Assembly: GCF_006345805.1 (NCBI RefSeq)
Contig: NC_043024.1
Span: 15,438,001-15,502,000, forward strand
Direction: 5' to 3'
DNA from: Octopus sinensis
Taxonomy: Eukaryota
Length of the DNA stretch: 64,000 nt
Part shown: one piece after another, positions 1 through 53,774 of the stretch
How the letters are laid out: each line of letters opens with the position of its first letter
Numbering within the stretch: the stretch's first letter is position 1
Notes under the pieces: model-generated
Seen by the model: the letters and a program-made list of their open reading frames with translations, nothing else
Databases searched by the model: none
What the model was told of the DNA's origin: nothing
Position numbers and translations under genes: made by a program

Positions 1-2130
1 AATTAATCCAATAATAAATTCGATAATATCCTATAATTAATCCTATAACATCCTATAATTAATCTTATAATATCCAATGATTAATCCTGTAATATTCTTT
101 AATTAATCTTAAAATATCCTATAATTAATCTTATAGTATCCTATAATTAATCCTATAATATCCTATAATTAATCCTATAATATCATATAATTATTCCTAT
201 AATATCATATAATTAATCTTATAATGTCCTATAATTAATCCAATAATATCCTACAATTAATCTTATAATATCCTATAATTAATCCTATAATATCCGATAA
301 TTAATCTTATAATATCCTATTATTAATCATATAATATCGTGTAATTAATCTTATAATATCCTAAAATTAATCCAATAATATCTTAAATTAATCTAATAAT
401 ATCCTATAATTAATGCTATAATTAATCCTATAATATACTGTAATTAATCCTACAATATCCTATAATTAATCCTATAATTAATCATATAATACCCTGTAAT
501 CAATCCTACAATATCCTATAATTAATCATATAATATCCTATAATAACCTATAATCAATACCATAATATCCTATAATTAATCCTATAATACCCTGTAATAA
601 CTCCTACAATATCCTATAATTAATCCTATGATATCCTAAAATTAATCTATAATAACCCTACAATTAATCTTATAATATCCTATAAGTAAATCTATAATAT
701 CCTATAATAAATCCTATAATATCCTATAATAAATCCTATAATATCCTATAATTAATCTTATAATATCATATAATTAATCTTATAATATCCTATAATTCAT
801 CCTATAATATCCTTTTATTAATCATGTAATATCCTATAATTAATCCTATAATATCCCACAATTAATTTTATAATATCCTATAATTAATCCTATAAATAAT
901 CCTATAATATCCTCTAATTAATCTTATAATATCCTATAATTCATCCAATGATATCCTATAATTAATCTTATAATATCCTATAATTTATCTTAAAATACCC
1001 TACAATTAATCCTATAATATCCTATAATTATTCCTATTGTATACTATAATTATTCCTATAGTATCCTTTAATTAATCTTATAATATCCTATAATATCCTA
1101 TAATTAATCTTATAATATCCTATAATTAATCCTTTAATATCCTATAATTAATCTTATAATATCCTATAATTAATCCTTTAACATCCTATAATTAATCTTA
1201 TAACATCCAATAATTAATCCTATGATATCCTATAGTTATTCTTATAATATCCTATAATTAATCCTATAATAACCAATAATTGATCTTATAATATCATATA
1301 GTTAATCTTATAATATCCCATGATTAATCCTATAATATCCTATAATTAATCCTATAATATCCTATAATTATTCCTATAATATCATATAATTAATCTTATA
1401 ATATCCTATAATTAATCCAATAATATCCTACAATTAATCTTATAATATCCTATAGTTAATCCTATAATTAATCCTATAATATCCTATAATTAATCTTATA
1501 ATAACCTATAATCAATACCACAATATCCTATAATTAATCCTATAATACCCTGTAATCAATCCTACAATATCCTATAATTAATCCTATGATATCCTAAAAT
1601 TAATCTATAATATCCCATTATTAAATAATCCTAAAAGACCCTGTTATCAATCCTATAATATCCTATAATTAATCCTATAATATCCTATAATTAATCCTAT
1701 ATATCCTATAATTAATCCTATAAAATCCTATAATTATTCCTATAATATCCAATAAATAATCTTAAAATATCCTATAATTAAGTTTATAATATCCTATAAT
1801 AAATCCTCTAATATCCTATAATTAATCTTATAATATCCTATAATTAATCCTATAATATCCTATAATTAATCTTATAATATCCTATAATTAATCCAATAAT
1901 ATCCTACAATTAATCTTATAATATCCTATAATTAATCCTATAATATCCTATAATTAATCCTATAATATCCTATAATTAATCCTATAATATCCTATAATTA
2001 ATCTTATAATACCCTTTAATCAATCCTACAAAATCCTATAATTAATCCTATAATATCCGATAATTAATCTTCTAATATCCTATTATTAATCCAATAATAT
2101 CGTGTAATTAATCCAATAATATCTTACAAT
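1..2130. repeat. AT-rich minisatellite, about 22-bp unit (TATAATTAATCC + TATAATATCC), almost G-free on the + strand
   Basis: Unit is repeated with point variants across the whole interval and is open at the window start. Confidence 0.95.
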
Positions 2131-2470
2131 TAATCTAATATGCATGTATGTATGTATATATATATATATATATATGCATGTATGTACGTATATATATATA
2201 TATGTATATGCATATGTATATGTATATGTATATATATACATACACACACATATATATATATGTATATGTATATATATACATACATATATATATATATATG
2301 TATATATATGTATATATATATATATATATACACATACATAGATATATACACATACATATATATATACATATATAAATATTGAGGTTTTAAGTGCTTATGT
2401 ATATATATATATATACACACACACACAGAAAGAAAGAGAGATATGCATATCTATATATATATGTGCGTTT
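2131..2470. repeat. (TA)n/(TG)n/(CA)n compound microsatellite
   Basis: Visible directly; source of the spurious YI-repeat ORFs. Confidence 0.95.
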
Positions 2471-2931
2471 GTATGCACGTGTATGTACATACATACATTC
2501 ATAATAAAGAGGAAAACGGAATAGTTCACCTAAAACTCATGCATGCCATGTGTTTGGTGGTTTTCAATTATTTAAACAAATCTACAGTATTTGTTGCATG
2601 TTGATTCGGAGTTCAGCACGCTACAATATGTATCATCAGCGGATTATATATCCAAAAAAGAAGACACTCTAAATGTAAGACACATAACGTGCTTACAGAA
2701 TTGACTAATGGCTTGCATTCATAAAGAACTATAAAGCTAAGTGCTGTAAGCATGCAGAACCATTCCATATATAGAGTGACCAGCCATATAATTAGCTTCC
2801 TATAAATATATATGTATATGTATATTTAATTTAAAATTTAATAAGGGTAGAAATTGATATTAATCAATTAAAACCAGTGGCCCAGCATATTAAAAAATCC
2901 AGAGATTAAAATATTTTTGCATACAAAATTT

Positions 2932-3147
2932 AAAGGACTGAACACTAAAAGTGGACGGTCAAGATGCTAGATATAGACGTCAAGTCGCTATTTTCCACAA
3001 AGAATATGTTCTCAAATAAAAACTCAGCACAAAACCAAAGCATTAAAAATATTTTATTTATTTGAGAACATATTTTTTGTGGAAAATAGCGATTTGACGT
3101 CTATATCTAGCATGTTGACCGTCCACTTTTTGAGTGGTCAGTCCTTT
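2932..3147. repeat. About 90-bp inverted repeat with a 36-nt spacer
   Basis: Arm 2932-3020 (aaaggactgaacactaaaagtggacggtc...tctcaaataaa) is the near-perfect reverse complement of 3057-3147. Confidence 0.92.
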
Positions 3148-3178
3148 ATCTATGTATATGTATATATAGTCAACATAC

Positions 3179-3292
3179 CTTTTGTTTAGGATAACCAACA
3201 ACTGTAGGAATCACTTTTCTTTCTTCATAATCACCTCCAAAACCAGCTTTACACATATATGATCCATGATCAATAACAATGGAAGCAACCAT
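3179..3292 (-). CDS. First coding exon of a divergent actin-family (actin-like/ARP) gene
   Basis: Translates [38 protein letters not shown], aligning to actin [36 protein letters not shown]. Ends in AAG|GTATGT (phase 0) at the actin 41/42 intron position. Candidate acceptor tttctatacatcag lies about 34 nt upstream of the ATG. Confidence 0.85.
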
Positions 3293-3686
3293 GCTTGTGT
3301 TTTTAGGTTGGATAGAATATTTCTGGCTGATGTATAGAAATATTAATGTTCAGTTTCTTAGTGTTGTGGCTTGTGGGATGTGAGCTTGTCTCAAATTTAG
3401 CTTCTGGTCCTTGGTAAGAGTAAAAATGTTATGGGAAAACAGGTACGATAGTAATTTATATACGTTTCATATTCTGTTGAACTGACCAATAAATTTTACT
3501 GTTTGCAAAACAAGGAAGTTTTCTTCATAGAAAATACGTATATGTTTTCAGTAACTAGATACAAGGGTGTTTAAAAAAATGTGATAAACCATACATTTGT
3601 TCACATGATATTATTGTATAAATATTTTAGAACAAACAATTCTTCCTTGTAAGATATTTTCTTCACTGGAATTCTCTTCCTGGTCC

Positions 3687-3689
<3 letters not shown>

Positions 3690-3717
<28 letters not shown>

Positions 3718-3763
3718 CATATATGAATATATATGAATGTATCTATATAATCTATGTGTGTGT

Positions 3764-3816
<53 letters not shown>

Positions 3817-4009
3817 CATATATGTATGTATATATATATATATACATATATATACACACACATATATATACACATACACATCACACACACATATAGATAT
3901 ATACAAGTTTGTATATACAAATATGTTTATAAATCTATATGTATTTATAAGTTTATATACAAACACATATGTCCACAAACACACATATATACTTATATAC
4001 ACATATATA
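3690..4009. repeat. (TA)n/(CA)n microsatellite
   Basis: Visible directly. Confidence 0.9.
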
Positions 4010-5293
4010 CAGGGTGAGATGGGTAAATTGTCTCCATTTTATATTTTTTATTGTACGCATGCTCATTGTTTGTTTTTAATTTTCTCAACTACACAGCATA
4101 GTAGGGTCAGTTGGGCACCATCTGTGAGGAAAACAATACTATGGCCAGAAATTTTTAAATGACATGCTGTATAGCTTGGCATTCATCCTGGAAGCTATTT
4201 CCCGTATGAACATTTCGGATTGTTGGGTGTCATCTGAGGACAGCGCAGAGGATTCGGGAAGAGTTTGAATGAGTCTATTGTTGATTATGAAGATATGGCA
4301 GCTCAAAAAACTCACTCTGATCATTCTGATAAGAAAAGAACTCTTGACCTTGTTGGTGAGGTTCAAGACATGGATTGATAACGACCCCTTCCAAGACAAT
4401 CAGTTCCATCACCAGGGACATGGGAATGTCTGAGTTTCTTATCAGACAGGTAGTGTGTGAAGCAATTTGGTATTCCTCATACAAGACGAGAAACAACCAG
4501 TTTTTATCCCAAGCCATTAAGGACAAGAGGAAAGACTCCTCTACGAAGTTTTTGAACAAACTCAAGTATCACCTCCAACCGAACATGCATTGGTTTTTCT
4601 CTGACAAGAAAAATTTCTCCCAGGATCAGATGGTAAACACACAGAACAACTGTTGGCTTGCTGTGCCCCGAAAACATGTACCGAGAATGATAAAAATCAA
4701 GCAACCAGTTAACATCATGGTGTCTGGAGTGATCACTAGCGATGGCGAGGTTATGCCACTGATCATCTTTCCACACGACCTCACACTCAACATGGGAACC
4801 TACATCAAGTGCCTGGAGGAGGTAGTGCTGCCTTGGGTCAAGATGGTGACTACTGGAAGACCATATGTCTGGTAAACAGGACTCTGAACCATATCACACA
4901 AGCAGGAGAATCCAGTCATAGCTGTCTGACAATTTCTGCGATCACACCACCCCTAACATCTAACTCCCCAGACTGCAACCCCTTTGATTATGTGTGGGGT
5001 ACATGTGAGCAAGAGACCAACAAAACTCCTTGTAACACCAAAGATGAACTGAAGGCAAGGATTATGGCAGCATTCACCAACTTGAACAAGGAGACTGTCC
5101 AGAAGGGTTGAGGAGATTCCAAAGTCGTCTGGCAGGTGTGATTTAAGCCAATGGCGATTTTATTGAACAAATTTACTTTTTATTATTTCAAGATATTTTT
5201 ATGTAATTTTAGTAAATATATCTGTTAAAATGAGATGTCAGTGTTATTTTCATTTTGGTGTAAGTTAGATGACAATTTATTCACTGCACCTTG
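4010..5293 (+). mobile_element. Degraded Tc1/mariner transposon, maT (DD37D)-type
   Basis: TA|CAGGGTG...TAAATTGTC left TIR and GACAATTTA...CACCTTG|TA right TIR. Transposase motifs FSDKKNF, GRPYVW, NSPDCNPFDYVW, with stops and frameshifts. Confidence 0.9.
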
Positions 5294-33990: not shown

Positions 33991-35235
33991 CATGGTGCGT
34001 AAGGTGTTCAAGAGGACATACCTCTTTTGGGTCACTGCTGCATTTTTGCTAACCCTATATAATCTTTGTTTCAGAAAATAATAATGGCAGACCCTCAGCT
34101 TACTCAAGAAATGGATAGGCATGCTGTTATTATGGTTTTAATAGCGATTTAGAAATATCTCGATTTTCAAAAGTTGCCAGATCTTTCATCTACAAAGTTT
34201 GTAAGGAGCTGGAGACTGAAGATGGAAACGTATCACAGGTATCAAAGCAAAAAAGCATTCTAAATGCTCTGGAATCATTAAAACACCTGAATTCATCTAG
34301 CAAGTTCAACAGACCATTGATTACAGTCCCAGAAAGTCCATGAGGTCATTTTCAAAAGTTCTCAATGTATCAGAAGGAACAGTCAGAAATGTTGTCCATG
34401 AAGACATCAGATATAAGTCTTATATGATGAGGAAAGGTCAGTTTGTCAGAAAAGGCAAAAGAAAATCACATCAGATTTAAAAGGCTCTTAAACAAACTGA
34501 AAAATCCAGTAGAAGAAGATTTGATTTGGTTTTTCTCAAATGAGAAAAACTTTGACCAAGATCAAAAAGTTAATAGAAGAAATAACAGATGGTTATGTGC
34601 AGACCCTTCTGAAGTTCCAAGTATTATGCACACAAAATTTCTTGCAACTGTCATGGTTTTAGGGGTTGTCAGCAGTAAAGGACATTTGATGCCGCCTTAC
34701 TTCTTTCCACAAGGCCTTAGAGTTAACTCTGCTGCCTACATTGAGGTCTTGGAGATAATTGTTAAGCCCTGGATAGACAGTGTATGCAATGGAAGGCCAT
34801 GTATTTCAGTAAGACTCTGCACTATGACACATGGCTCTAGTAACACAGGAAGGGAAGCTTGAAAATTTTCATGATCACATAACCTCTAACATTTAGCCTC
34901 CTAATTCCCCAGATCTCAATCCATTGGACTATTACATGGGGAGCATTGTTGAGAGAGAGGTCAATGAACACACCCATAACACCAAAGATTCTTTGAAAGC
35001 TGCCGTAGTCAGAGTAATGTCCAAAATGAACCAGGACCAATTGATTCGAGCATGTAGGTGATTTAGATCTCATATAGAAGCAGTTGTTGAAGCTGAAGGT
35101 GGCTTTATTGAATAACATTATAGAAAAGAAGGTTTATTTTTATCCTCATAGCATTTTTTGATAAATAAAGTTATTATCTGTTATATATGTTTTTTTATAA
35201 ACATAAATCTGTCCTCAGATATTTTACGCAACTTG
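33991..35235 (+). mobile_element. Degraded maT (DD37D) transposon, second subfamily
   Basis: TA|CATGGTGCGTAA ... TTACGCAACTTG|TA termini. WFFSNEKNF, and D-SAL*HMALVTQEGKLENFHDHITSNI*PPNSPDLNPL-D, which counts 37 residues between the D's. Confidence 0.9.
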
Positions 35236-40255: not shown

Positions 40256-40599
40256 AAAAAAAAATAATATAAAATGATGGTAGATTCTAAGACAGGATCC
40301 GAGAAGAGAGCAATGAGACTGACCTAACCTGCAACTGGTGCCGTTATGGGTCATTCCAAATATCACATACAACATGGCAGTGTTTCTGCAATCACTGATG
40401 TTAATAGAAAGAGAAACCTCATGTGTTTTCAGGACATTGTTGAAAAATTAAGCAACACTTTATTTGCGATAATGAGATCCTTATTATCTTTATCATTATT
40501 AGTGACATTAAGCAATAACTCATTCCACAACCCTCACACACACACACACACACATCCCTTCAGGCATTCTTCTATTTACCATCTTTCTACAACCCCCAC

Positions 40600-41280
40600 T
40601 TTCTTTCTCTTTCCTTCTTTCTTTCACTTTCATTCTTCTCAGTTTCCTTTTTCTCATTCTTTTGACATTTTCATTCTTTTTTCTCTTTCGTCCTTTCTAC
40701 AGTTTCCTTTATAGTTTTCCTTCTTTCATTCTTTTAACAGTTTTCTTTCTTTTTACATTTTCATTCATTTTTCCCTTTCATCTTTTCACAGTTTCTTTCT
40801 TTCTATCTCTTTCATTCTTGTCAGTTTCCTTTTGCTCTTTCATTTCAGTTCCTTTTTCTTTCATTCTTTTGACATTTTCATTATTTTTTCTCTTTCGTCC
40901 TTTTTATAGTTTCCTTCTTTATAGTTTTCCTTCCTTCATTCTTTTAACAGTTTTCTTTCCTTTTACATTTTCATTCATTTTTCTCTTTCATTCTTGTCAG
41001 TTTCCTTTTGCTCTTTCATTTCAGTTCCTTTTTCTTTCATTCTTTTAAGATTTCTTTCTCTTTCATTCTTTTTTCTCTTTCACCTTTTTTAGTTTCCTTC
41101 TTTCTTTCTCTTTCACTCTTTTCTTAGTTTCCTTTTTCTCTTTCATTTCAGTTCCTTTTTCTTTCATTCTTTTTTCTCTTTCATCTTTTCACAGTTTCCT
41201 TCTTCCTTTCTTGTTCATTCTTTTCATTTTCCTCCTTTTCTCTCATTCATTCTTTCCACAGTCCCCATTTTTGTTTCCCC
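40600..41280. repeat. Polypyrimidine degenerate tandem repeat (about 200-bp higher-order unit)
   Basis: ctctttcattctt and cagtttcctt motifs recur; 40665-40860 resembles 40865-41040. Confidence 0.8.
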
Positions 41281-42251
41281 CCCCTTCCCTTCCTCTCATC
41301 TTTCACAATCTCTTTGCATCAGCTCTCCATCCACCTCTCTCATATAAAGTCCGACATTTAAACTCTAATTTTAGATTCTACACCAAACGACCATTTCTTG
41401 ACATCACTACTATGAACTCCCTGGCAGAGATTATATACACAAGGGTCAACTCACTCTCAACCCTAACAAAACCTTCACCAATCAGTGTCCTACAAACACA
41501 GGATGTCTTCCTGCTGACCTCTGCTCCTAATGCTACCGAAAATCCTGACAGGTGATGTGACTGAATCAGGTCCATTGAAGCAAGCTCCACCAGATAATTC
41601 TATCCTAATAACCTGAACAAGCTTTATACTTCTCCACTGGTCTTCCATCAATTCTTTCAGTTATATTTCTATTGAATTACACTGCCTCTGTTTCAATTAA
41701 TTCTGGAAAAGAATTTAGCGCAATAACTTCATCATTATTTACATTCAATGGATATTTGTTTGATAGATGTCACACTGAATGTCCGTGAGAACTAACTACG
41801 TTATGGGTATACATGACTGTGGAGTACTCGACCACTTGCATGTTAATTTCATGAGCAGGCTCTTCCATTGATTGGATCAACTTGAACCCTCGTTGTCATA
41901 ACGGATGGAGAACCAGGCCTGCTAACTCCAGGAGGATTAAAGACAAAGGTGACCTCTTGCATTGGTCTAATAGGGACACAGAATACAAATTCCACCAAGG
42001 TCGACTTTGCCTTTCATCTTTTCGGGGTCGATAAATTAAGTACCAGTTACGCACAGGGGTCGATGTAATCGACTTAATCCCTTTGACTGTCCTTGTTTGT
42101 CCCCTCTATCTATAGCCCCTTGTGGGCAGTAAAGAAATAAGAACCATGGTGTAAGTTCATGCGGGTCTTTATGGCTGAGCAATATATACACCACAGTTGA
42201 AGGAAATAAAGGTACCAGAAGGTTCTGAAGTAAATTCCCACTAAAGTTGTT

Positions 42252-44319: not shown

Positions 44320-45590
44320 GTGGGGGGAGGGAGAGAGAGAGAGAGAGAAGCTATGGGGTTGAGGGAGAGAGAGAGAGAGAAGCTATGGGGTTGAGAGAGA
44401 GAGAGAGAGAGAGAAGCTATGGGGTTGAGAGAGAGAGAGAGAGAAGCTATGGGGTTGAAGGAAAGAGAGAAAGAAGAATGCAAAAGGAGAATGAGGGCAA
44501 GCAGGAGCAAGACAAAGGAGAAAGGGGACAGCAGAACAGATAAAGGATAGAAAAAGAGGGTTAGAATATAAAGAGGGTTAGGGTTAGGGAAAAATAAAGA
44601 AAGCAGAAACTGTAGAAAGAATGAGAGAGAGAGAGAGAGGGAGAGAGGGAGAGAGAGTGACAGACAGACAGACTAATCTTTAAACAGAATGAAAGAGGAG
44701 ACTGCAGAAGAGATGAAGGATAGAAAAAGAGGGGTCAGAAAAATAATGAAAGTGGGAACTGTAGAATGAAAGAAAGAGAGAGAGAGAGAGAGGAGGAGAG
44801 AGAGGTAGAGATACAGAGAGAGACAAAATGAAAGAGAAAGAGGAGCATGCAGAGGGAATAAAAGGGGCTCTACAAATATAGAAAGAGGAAAAGGGTAATG
44901 TAGGAAGAATGAGAGAGAGAGAAAGAGGGAACGTTAGGAAGAATGAAAGAGAGAGAAAGAGGGGACATTAGGAAGAATGAAAGAGAGAGAAAGAGGGGAC
45001 ATTAGGAAGAATGAAAGAGAAGCGATATTAAGAAGCATGAAAGAGAGGTGGGTACTGTAAAAAGAATAAAAAGGAGTTAGAAAGAAGGGACAGTAAGAAG
45101 AAAGAAAAAGAGGGGATTTCAATGAGCATGAAATAGAAAGAGGGAAGTCTATGAAGAATGAAAGAGAGGGGAGGACATGAGGAAGAATGAAAGAGAGAGA
45201 GATGGGGATATGAAGAATAAAAGAGAGAGAGAGGACATTAGGAAAAATTGGGAGAGAGAGGGGGGGATTGTAGGAAGAATGAAAGACAGAGGAGAGTGTG
45301 GAGAGAGATGGAGAGCATGTGTAAGAGAAATGGAAAGATAAAGGGATGCTGAGAAAGTGGGAGAGATGTGAGAGGAGGCAGAGAGAGATACAAAGCGAAT
45401 GGGAGGTGAGGGAGAGATGAGACAGGTGAAGTGGAGAGAGAAAAAGATGAGACAGAGAGGCAGGAGAGAGAGAGAGAGAGAGAGAGAGACAAGATAGAAG
45501 CAGAGTAGGAGAGACAGAGAGGCAGAGAGGGGGATGGAAAGAGAGTGAGAGTAAGAGGAATGAGAGAGAGAAAGAGAGAGGGGGATTATT
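44320..45590. repeat. Polypurine (GA-rich) tract, including 4x agaagctatggggttga(ga)n minisatellite
   Basis: Visible directly. Confidence 0.9.
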
Positions 45591-45639
45591 TTTAAAGAAC
45601 TGTTGACTCCGGCTGTAATCCTCAATAAGAGCAGCTAAT

Positions 45640-46210
45640 GTGTGTGTGTGTATATGTGTGTATGTGTGTTTGTGTGTTTATGTGTCTATGAGTATATGTG
45701 TGAGTGTGTGTGTATGTGTATGCATGCATGTGTATGTTTTTGTATGTGTATGTATGTGTGTGTATGTGTGTGTGTTTGTATGTGTTTGTATGTGTATGTG
45801 TCTATGTGTATGTGTGTAAGCGTGTATGTGTATATGTGTGAATGTGTATGTGTATATGTGTGTGTGTATGTGTATGCATGCATGTGTATGTTTTTGTATG
45901 TATGTGTGTATGTGTTTGCATGTATTTGTATGTGTTTATATGTATGTGTATGTGTTTATATGTATGCGTATGTGTATGTGTTTGCATGTGTGTGTAAGTG
46001 TATGTATGTGTGTATGTGTGTGAGTGCATATGTGTGTAGTTGGTTTTATTACATGGGAGAAACCCTTAAGGAGAATAAATATGGCTAACATTGCCCCCAC
46101 ATGCAACACACAGGGAAACACAATGTGATAATTTAAGGCTATTTACTTCACACTCACTGAATGTTGCTGATGTTGTTGTTGTTGTTGTTGGGAGTAGTAG
46201 TAGTAGTAGC

Positions 46211-46249
<39 letters not shown>

Positions 46250-46268
46250 GGTGGTAGTGGTGGTAGTT

Positions 46269-46299
<31 letters not shown>

Positions 46300-46479
46300 T
46301 AGTGGTAGTAGTAGTGGTGGTGGTGGTAGTGGTGGTGGTGGTAGTTGTAGTAGTAGTAGTAGTAGTAGTAGAGATGGTGGTATTAGTAGTAGTAGAGATG
46401 GTGGTAGTAGTAGTAGTAGTAGTAGAGATGGTGGTAGTTGTAGTAGTAGTAGTAGAGATGGTAGTAGTAGTAGTAGAGA

Positions 46480-46511
<32 letters not shown>

Positions 46512-46570
46512 GAGATGGTGGTAGTAGTAGTAGTAGTAGTAGTAGAGATGGTGGTAGTGATGGTGGTGCT
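45640..46570. repeat. (TG/TATG)n then (GTA/GGT)n compound microsatellites
   Basis: Visible directly; source of poly-S/T/V ORFs. Confidence 0.92.
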
Positions 46571-46779
46571 TAGCCTCAAACCAAGGTCTGACTATACACA
46601 AGCTGTGTGACATTGGTGGTGGCAGCAGTGGTAATGGTTGTGTTGTAAATGGTGATAGTGATGTTGTTGGCGGTGGTGTTGGTGATGGTTGTTGTTAATA
46701 ATAGTTGTGATGGTGATGGTGATGGTGGAGGTGGTAGTGATACTATTGTCATTGTTGTTGATGTTGGTGATGCTGTTGT

Positions 46780-52455: not shown

Positions 52456-53084
52456 TCACGACCGTCCGAACAATGGAAACATGGAACTCTGAATAACAGT
52501 TCTGTGATAATTTTGCTGCCTTAATAAAACATATATATATATATGTGCATAATATGTATGCATACATATATGCATACGCATATACATATGCACATAAACA
52601 CATACATGCACACAGATGTATACATACATATAGACAGGCATGCGTACATAGACATACGCACAATCATGCATATATATATACACCCACATTCACACGTTTA
52701 CATACACACACACATGTATACATACAGATACATACACACATACACCTGTAGATATACACTCATACACACACCTGTAGAAATACACATACACTCACATGTA
52801 GACATACACATACGCTCTCACACACCTGTAGAAATTCACATACACTCACACATGTATACATACACATACACTCACACATACATGTATACATACGCATGTA
52901 TACACACACACACACACATACAGACATACACACACGTGCATGCATGTATGTATCCCCACTTGAAGAACATATCCAGGCTAACCGTCTTCATATGGTGCCA
53001 CAGAAACTTCAAAGATATTTCTATGATATTTACACAGGATTTTATGTGAAATCAATGTTGCGGTACCCACTCTGGTTGTTGTTG

Positions 53085-53300
53085 TTGCTGATAGTGCTAT
53101 TATTATTATCATTATTATTATTTTTATTTTTATTATTATTATTATTATCATCATCATCATCATTATTATTATCATCATTATTATTATCATTATTATTATC
53201 ATTATTATTATTATCATTATTATTATCATTATTATTATTATTATTCTTATTCTTCTTCTTATTATTATTATCATCATTATTATTATCATTATTATTATTA

Positions 53301-53334
<34 letters not shown>

Positions 53335-53368
53335 CATTATTATTATTATTATTATTGTTATTATTATT

Positions 53369-53403
<35 letters not shown>

Positions 53404-53415
53404 CATCATTATTGT
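53085..53415. repeat. (ATT/ATC)n microsatellite
   Basis: Visible directly. Confidence 0.93.
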
Positions 53416-53774
53416 AGGTGTAGAAAAATGGTAACAACATGAAAGGAATAAAAAAAAAAACAAAGGAAAACGTGAATTTCATGTAAGGCAAACAGACTAC
53501 AGAATATTTTTATTACTGTTATTATTGTTATTGTTATTATTATTGTTGTTGTTAATGCTTGTTGCATGTCATAAGCCCTACACATGCCACCTCACAGCTT
53601 GATTAATATTACTGAGATTTATCTAGCAAGGAATGGAACAGAGAGAGAGAGAGAGAGAACACATACATACATAGGTATGTATACATGTGTGTGTGTGTGT
53701 GTGTGTGCATGTATTTTTGTTCAGAGATAGTTACATAGATAGAAAGTGCAAGAGATTGATAGATGCACCTAAAG

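Follow-up and report, generated by a model that had tools for sequence, protein, structure and literature searches.

A probable non-canonical actin gene at the end of a young tandem array in Octopus sinensis

Actin is among the most constrained of eukaryotic proteins. Conventional actin polymerises and hydrolyses ATP; its members share ~90% or more mutual identity, carry DNGSG in the first phosphate loop and DSGDG in the second, together with H161 and Q137, and have as filament interfaces the D-loop, the hydrophobic plug (262-274), the hydrophobic cleft, a C-terminus ending in HRKCF and an acidic N-terminus. The stretch of Octopus sinensis DNA analysed here, which spans 15438001-15502000 of contig C28, is 64,000 nucleotides long and is called the window throughout, holds near its left end a short minus-strand exon whose first phosphate loop reads DHGSY, and a preliminary description took it for a hidden exon of an orphan, divergent actin-family gene. 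The question raised by this locus is whether the exon belongs to a complete gene, from what kind of actin that gene descends, and what a protein altered in this manner could still do.

The exon and the gene to which it belongs

The exon (3179..3292, minus strand) consists of 38 codons, from the Met encoded by the ATG at 3292-3290 to Lys38, whose AAG ends at 3179, and its peptide finishes in GYPKQK. In a stop-to-stop frame of 59 codons, this ATG comes first, and its context is Kozak-like, with A at -3 and G at +4. A GTATGT donor follows (3173..3178, minus strand), in phase 0 at the position of the actin 41/42 intron; the same donor is common to the duplicate copy C2, to Octopus vulgaris and to subfamily A, and subfamily B has GTACGT. 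On the other side, a leader of 34 bases (3293..3326) connects the ATG to a candidate acceptor CAG (3327..3329) lying after a T-rich tract, and the AG of this site is kept in subfamilies A and B, where TAG precedes CCAGG. On re-reading, we found every element that had been described, namely the 38 codons, the ATG, the donor and the candidate acceptor with an exon start at 3326, and the letters of the DHGSY loop and of the quoted 18-residue change were as given for the minus strand.

When the entire 2.7-Gb genome was scanned in six frames with the Pfam Actin model PF00022, this frame was picked up (HMM 4-42, E 9e-5). We found no actin-like sequence in window positions 1-3178, to the left of the exon, in agreement with the earlier account; the second exon sits outside the window. 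It comprises 336 codons plus a stop on the same strand, at C28:15434314-15435324 (L024:2472-1462), which corresponds to window coordinates of about -3686 to -2676, 2.7 kb past the left edge. Its open frame gave 274 bits in the genome scan (HMM 39-406), and its acceptor, with ttattatattgcag before the junction and AAAAATTCT after it, is in the right phase (phase 0). The intron between the two exons measures 5,854 nt, and its 5' part occupies window positions 1..3172, the remainder lying beyond the left edge. When the full coding sequence was assembled from the sequence left of the window, as the preliminary description had proposed, the spliced product of 374 aa matched XP_029652512.2, "actin-like isoform X3 [Octopus sinensis]", at every residue. 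This product scores 323 bits against PF00022 (cut-off 27), with residues 2-363 on HMM positions 4-407. Exon 1 is more than a chance frame because the genome-wide scan picks it and the spliced peptide matches a RefSeq protein, and since splicing to exon 2 reproduces that protein we consider the exon real: window positions 3179-3292 are the first coding exon of an actin-like gene with two coding exons. The exon can no longer be called hidden, as RefSeq already includes it in its model. RefSeq models may come entirely from prediction. The gene model itself is already annotated, and it is the array around it, its young actin origin and the pattern of residue loss that are worth a note.

The region upstream of the gene is better conserved than its intron: ~220 nt upstream of the ATG can be aligned between subfamilies, and the intron cannot. 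The stretch at 3330..3520 (minus strand) aligns across subfamilies A, B and C, and the element TATATAAA at 3462-3455 is kept in the C copies only. It is possible that this stretch represents the promoter and 5'UTR, or an internal acceptor region following a non-coding exon. The intron is rich in repeats. Much of it is filled by ~97 copies of a 22-bp satellite, ATCCTATAATTAATCCTATAAT (6..2135), of which a smaller block lies near exon 2 (L024:2964-3172); in the O. vulgaris model P0124, remnants of this satellite beside exon 2 appear to have been taken for coding sequence (GIIGLIIGYCGIDYRIDYK). A palindromic, MITE-like insert of 218 bp (2931..3148), with 79-nt arms that are 94% complementary, sits ~30 nt after the donor; dozens of further copies, ~90% identical, are spread over many contigs in either orientation. 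TA/CA microsatellites are also present in the window to the left of exon 1.

We saw no other gene-like open reading frames in the 64-kb window. Two related ORFs on the plus strand (4360-4875 and 34431-34862), which share the motif ...FS.EKNF.QDQ.VN..NN.W..., look like remnants of mobile-element proteins, and neither they nor the other longer ORFs elsewhere in the window gave a Pfam match. Low-complexity or microsatellite tracts (CT-rich sequence and AGT and TAT trinucleotide arrays) occupy 40500-41600, 44900-46600 and 53000-53500, and account for strong local GC skews.

A tandem array derived from conventional actin

The gene is not an orphan in its genome, as had been supposed, but one of at least eight tandem paralogues. 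From the PF00022 matches and the 3-4-kb loci around them, we described an array of ~162 kb on C28 (15.279-15.441 Mb; matches C28:15279543-15441289) that contains at least eight intact two-exon actin paralogues in three subfamilies and one pseudogene. Subfamily A has a single unit on the minus strand (L016) with two identical exon-1 copies, subfamily B has five units (L017-L020 and L022), two on the minus strand and three on the plus strand, and subfamily C has two units on the minus strand, L021 (C2) and the window gene (C1). The subfamily A exon-1 copies, L003 and L004 (C28:15288722-15288838 and 15286351-15286467), lie 2.4 kb apart and encode the same 41-residue peptide. RefSeq names the subfamily B genes "actin-3-like" or "actin-like". 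The pseudogene (C28:15425160-15425909) covers PF00022 positions 219-405 with eight stops and lies between C1 and C2, 8.4 kb from C1; O. vulgaris has a matching frameshifted fragment in the syntenic position (L039:38690-39453). Because the PF00022 scan gave no further Actin match to the right of the window gene, the array ends within the window.

Several lines of evidence point to the parent of this array. The conventional actin genes of the same genome have a first exon covering HMM 2-42 and a second exon that begins with GVMVGMGQ after the AG; they split at HMM 42/43, which bears out the earlier statement that the intron position is exact, and the array shares their 41/42 phase-0 intron. Synonymous divergence (dS) between array members and the conventional actin L011 (C7:24963941-24964921) is only ~0.5, and that among the conventional octopus actins is 1.7 or more, or saturated, at 91-96% identity. 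Unrooted nucleotide and codon trees gave ((B,actins),(A,C)) with 99% support and an L011 branch of 0.009, which, with the actins as root, is the topology expected if the array arose once from an L011-like actin. The nearest relatives of the window protein are conventional actins, at 52-55% identity; its 60 best matches among solved structures are all conventional actins, and all database matches outside Octopus are ordinary actins, at 52-54% identity. In the databases searched, only three species had relatives with the signature SV(N/D/S)VGHGITQ, namely O. sinensis, O. vulgaris and, with the B type alone, O. bimaculoides. These comparisons support the derivation of the array from a conventional, cytoplasmic-type actin gene, L011-like, whose intron was kept, in line with the divergent actin paralogue proposed initially. 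Other copies of actin in the genome include two divergent actin-like genes, L015 (C12920:22944-23909), with ECGHG in the second loop and H161 kept, and L023 (C8:24950460-24951395), which is more ARP-like, as well as L009 and L012, full-length actin ORFs without the 41/42 intron that may be retrocopies.

Two other accounts of the exon were considered and rejected, both with a probability that we put close to nil. An orphan pseudo-exon without a partner would agree with the lack of actin-like sequence in window positions 1-3178; it is ruled out by the downstream exon 2, which is open over 336 codons behind an acceptor in phase, 5.85 kb downstream, and by the identity of the spliced product to XP_029652512.2. 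Orthology to one of the canonical ARPs (Arp1-Arp10) could be argued from the ~52% identity to actin, a value in the ARP range, and from the DxGSY form of the first loop, which also occurs in Arp4/BAF53 (ACTL6A, chain 7vdv_N, DIGSYT). Against this reading stand the actin nearest relatives, among solved structures as well as in the non-Octopus databases, the low dS to an octopus actin, the actin-specific intron common to both, and a tree that nests the array beside L011; together they rule it out. The preliminary description had set its proposal against these same two outcomes, and we found that a downstream actin exon exists and that the top matches are not a known ARP, as it had expected. As judged by its sequence relationships, the window gene is a lineage-specific, non-canonical actin and not a canonical ARP.

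The two C units are the products of a segmental duplication whose ~99% homology starts near 4616, its upstream part spanning 3293..4616 (minus strand) in the window; this start falls inside the ORF at 4360-4875. Their exon-1 copies differ at 3 of 114 nt, an excess over the flanks (19/2084) that is not significant (p = 0.10), and the excess in exon 2 is marginal (p = 0.035). Differences in exon 2 are unevenly placed: between C1 (L024:1462-2472) and C2 (L021:1465-2475), nt 197-686 are identical, with 11 differing sites before this stretch and eight after it, and the first 52 nt, which encode the D-loop, hold seven of the differences. The identical stretch is a gene-conversion tract. O. vulgaris has an intact 374-aa counterpart (CAI9741794.1, P0002; 91% identity), whose exon 1 has DHGSY, the same leader, the CAG and the GTATGT, and whose exon 2, also intact, follows the same acceptor. 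A second exon-1 copy in that species (OX597840.1, L039:17938-18051) is frameshifted by a deletion ahead of the donor, and the equivalents of the flanks at window positions 5364-3454 and 3689-2140 are each present twice, in an order that differs from that of O. sinensis. A further O. vulgaris model, P0124, shares the KNSGP form of the D-loop that exon 2 of the window gene encodes. Because O. vulgaris has the DHGSY exon 1 as well as the KNSGP form, the two C variants are probably older than the split between the two species and have since been mixed by conversion.

Residue changes, rate of change and competing explanations

We mapped the residues of the window protein in actin numbering. Retained actin residues include D11, G13, S14, K18, H73, Q137, G156, G158, K213, E214 and G302. 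Changes at phosphate and catalytic positions comprise G15Y, D154N, S155V, D157H and H161Q, together with K336E and R210N, so that the first loop is DHGSY in place of DNGSG and the second reads NVGHGITQ in place of DSGDG with H161. The altered phosphate loop reported in the preliminary description is real, but it is not special to this gene: G15Y/H, D154N, D157H and H161Q occur in all array members, and DHGSY is set apart only by N12H, a change that the window copy shares with one O. vulgaris copy (C2 keeps N). In the subfamily of the window gene, the D-loop is rewritten and two residues shorter, and the hydrophobic-plug residues 265-270 are deleted. The subfamily also carries a charged target-binding cleft (A144D, I345R, L349R, T351P) and an altered W-loop (E167G, G168A, Y169S), and the window protein has an N-terminus (MVAS) that is not acidic and a C-terminus that is eight residues longer and lacks C374 and F375. 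By sequence, it falls outside conventional actin in identity, in both phosphate loops and in its filament interfaces. AlphaFold with the single sequence gave a pLDDT of 31; with an alignment, AF2 returned a weak model (pLDDT 57, below 50 over residues 1-61; pTM 0.57) whose Foldseek matches were all actins (E 1e-28, TM 0.58), which favours an actin fold as far as so weak a model can, and gives no structural argument about the altered loops.

Compared with L011, with which it has in common two coding exons, the 41/42 phase-0 intron, the dS given above and minor residues such as EISALAPP, the window gene has replaced 45-48% of its residues, including the phosphate loops, H161, the D-loop, the plug, the cleft and both termini, at an omega of ~0.85 versus 0.03. 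For the whole array, maximum-likelihood omega is 0.84-0.87, and Nei-Gojobori dN/dS is 0.6-0.85 between subfamilies, 0.9-2.3 between close copies and 0.03 between conventional actins. Eight of the nine copies are stop-free, compared with a probability of 0.0025 of finding no stop when actin exon 2 is evolved neutrally to 0.25 substitutions per site, and rates are heterogeneous from codon to codon (a gamma term gives dlnL 59). Because of these open frames and of the codon-rate heterogeneity, the family has, on the evidence of its codons, been maintained as coding sequence, with an average constraint that is weak. An omega mixture without synonymous-rate variation prefers a class with omega 2-3 (2dlnL 38.9); with such variation the statistic is 7.9 (p ~0.02), in an alignment where gene conversion is present. 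We dropped the strong positive selection suggested by the one-dimensional mixture, whose signal is mostly gone once synonymous rates vary.

It is important to consider that the recent record is powerless for the window copy alone because, in simulation, 25-66% of neutral copies remain stop-free at 1-4% divergence. This copy could have lost function recently, and the dN/dS of 0.9-2.3 in subfamily C fits selection as well as neutral drift. The window gene would then be a duplicate freed from constraint not long ago, evolving in effect neutrally and decaying towards a pseudogene, with a frame that is open only because the time elapsed is too short. Its dN/dS of 2.3 against C2 and 1.14 against O. 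vulgaris P0002, its 14 private changes versus five in C2, the neighbouring pseudogene and the frameshifted exon-1 copy in O. vulgaris would all agree with this, as would the loss of catalytic and interface residues. The losses of actin residues, however, are common to the whole subfamily or family and hence old, the frames have remained uninterrupted across a dS of at least 0.25, intact O. vulgaris models contain both the DHGSY version of exon 1 and the exon 2 with KNSGP, the donor, the acceptor and the ATG context are intact, and codons differ strongly in rate; we consider neutral decay unlikely. Another possibility concerns the independence of the units. RefSeq treats both C units (C28:15397937-15441292) as one gene with three isoforms: X3 joins the window exon 1 to its own exon 2, X1 joins the C2 exons, and X2 joins the window exon 1 to the C2 exon 2, about 42 kb away. 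X2 may be a genuine product of read-through splicing, or an artefact that arose in modelling from the near identity of the exon-1 copies. If the former, the locus might work as a set of cassettes in which an exon 1 splices to its own or to the next unit's exon 2 and yields combinatorial isoforms, rather than as independent genes, and the X2 combination does recur in the O. vulgaris model P0002. Since the exon-1 copies differ at so few positions, reads and models can be mis-assigned, and each unit comes complete with an upstream region and both exons; we regard such a cassette locus as very unlikely. A broader proposal, in which a genus-restricted array under diversifying selection joins exons 1 and 2 of neighbouring units through splicing and mixes them through gene conversion, giving a non-polymerising, ATPase-altered repertoire for a lineage-specific structure such as the sperm or the spermatophore, seems to us quite unlikely.

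The explanation that we favour, and hold to be probable, is that C1 is a live actin-like gene closing a tandem array derived from conventional actin, and that it encodes a non-canonical actin with altered hydrolysis, acting outside F-actin; we infer its biochemistry from what is known of residues in conventional actin, and its expression by analogy. The structure of the gene, the array, its origin, its rate of change and its altered residues are shown by our comparisons: the array arose from a conventional actin gene, with the core kept and the residues for phosphate contact and hydrolysis replaced, and the window subfamily has in addition dismantled its filament and partner interfaces (D-loop, plug, cleft, W-loop and termini). 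The window protein would probably still bind nucleotide and hydrolyse it poorly or differently. It would be expected to stay out of canonical F-actin and away from cleft-binding partners, and may act as a monomeric or specialised structural or regulatory subunit. Its gene is perhaps restricted to one tissue, for which the male germline offers a precedent.

Relation to known non-canonical actins

The closest known kind is that of the lineage-specific, non-canonical actin-like proteins, which are a kind and not a clade. Our literature search found no relevant paper on an octopus actin-like cluster. In the Drosophila obscura group, D-ActL2 and D-ActL3, described together with D-ActL1 and Arp2D, have 57-67% identity to conventional actin, and male-germline expression and positive selection have been shown for the fly actin-like paralogues (Schroeder et al. 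2020, PMC7038667). The D-ActL genes and the octopus array are alike in being lineage-restricted, nearest to conventional actin (52-64% identity in octopus), fast in protein evolution and pseudogenised in some copies. They differ in that the fly genes are dispersed single duplicates, whereas the octopus genes form a tandem array of at least eight units with the parental intron kept. The selection signal in octopus is not robust.

In mammals, ACTL7A/B, ACTRT1-3 and ACTL9 are non-canonical, lie outside the Arp1-10 classes and have diverged nucleotide and polymer interfaces. The mammalian testis actin-like proteins are termed 'orphan Arps' (PMC3064208). The octopus array resembles them in its non-canonical character and in the divergence of both kinds of interface, but its origin is independent, without orthology, and much younger, its synonymous sites being still alignable to actin. 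Arp4, an ancient protein with long insertions, works in chromatin remodellers. It shares with the array the D-x-G-S-Y form of the first loop, with Tyr at the position of actin G15, and a second loop that is likewise non-canonical; there is no link of descent, given the nearness of the array to conventional actins and its low dS. On the sequences compared, the Tyr at G15 is a convergent, single-residue feature.

Actin copies that escape constraint, studied so far in flies and mammals, show what can change in this protein and which new cytoskeletal roles arise. With its synonymous sites still aligning to the parent actin, the octopus eight-gene array would let the ATP site and the filament interfaces be studied as a clean natural experiment, and it is a candidate for a cephalopod-specific, possibly reproductive, cell biology.
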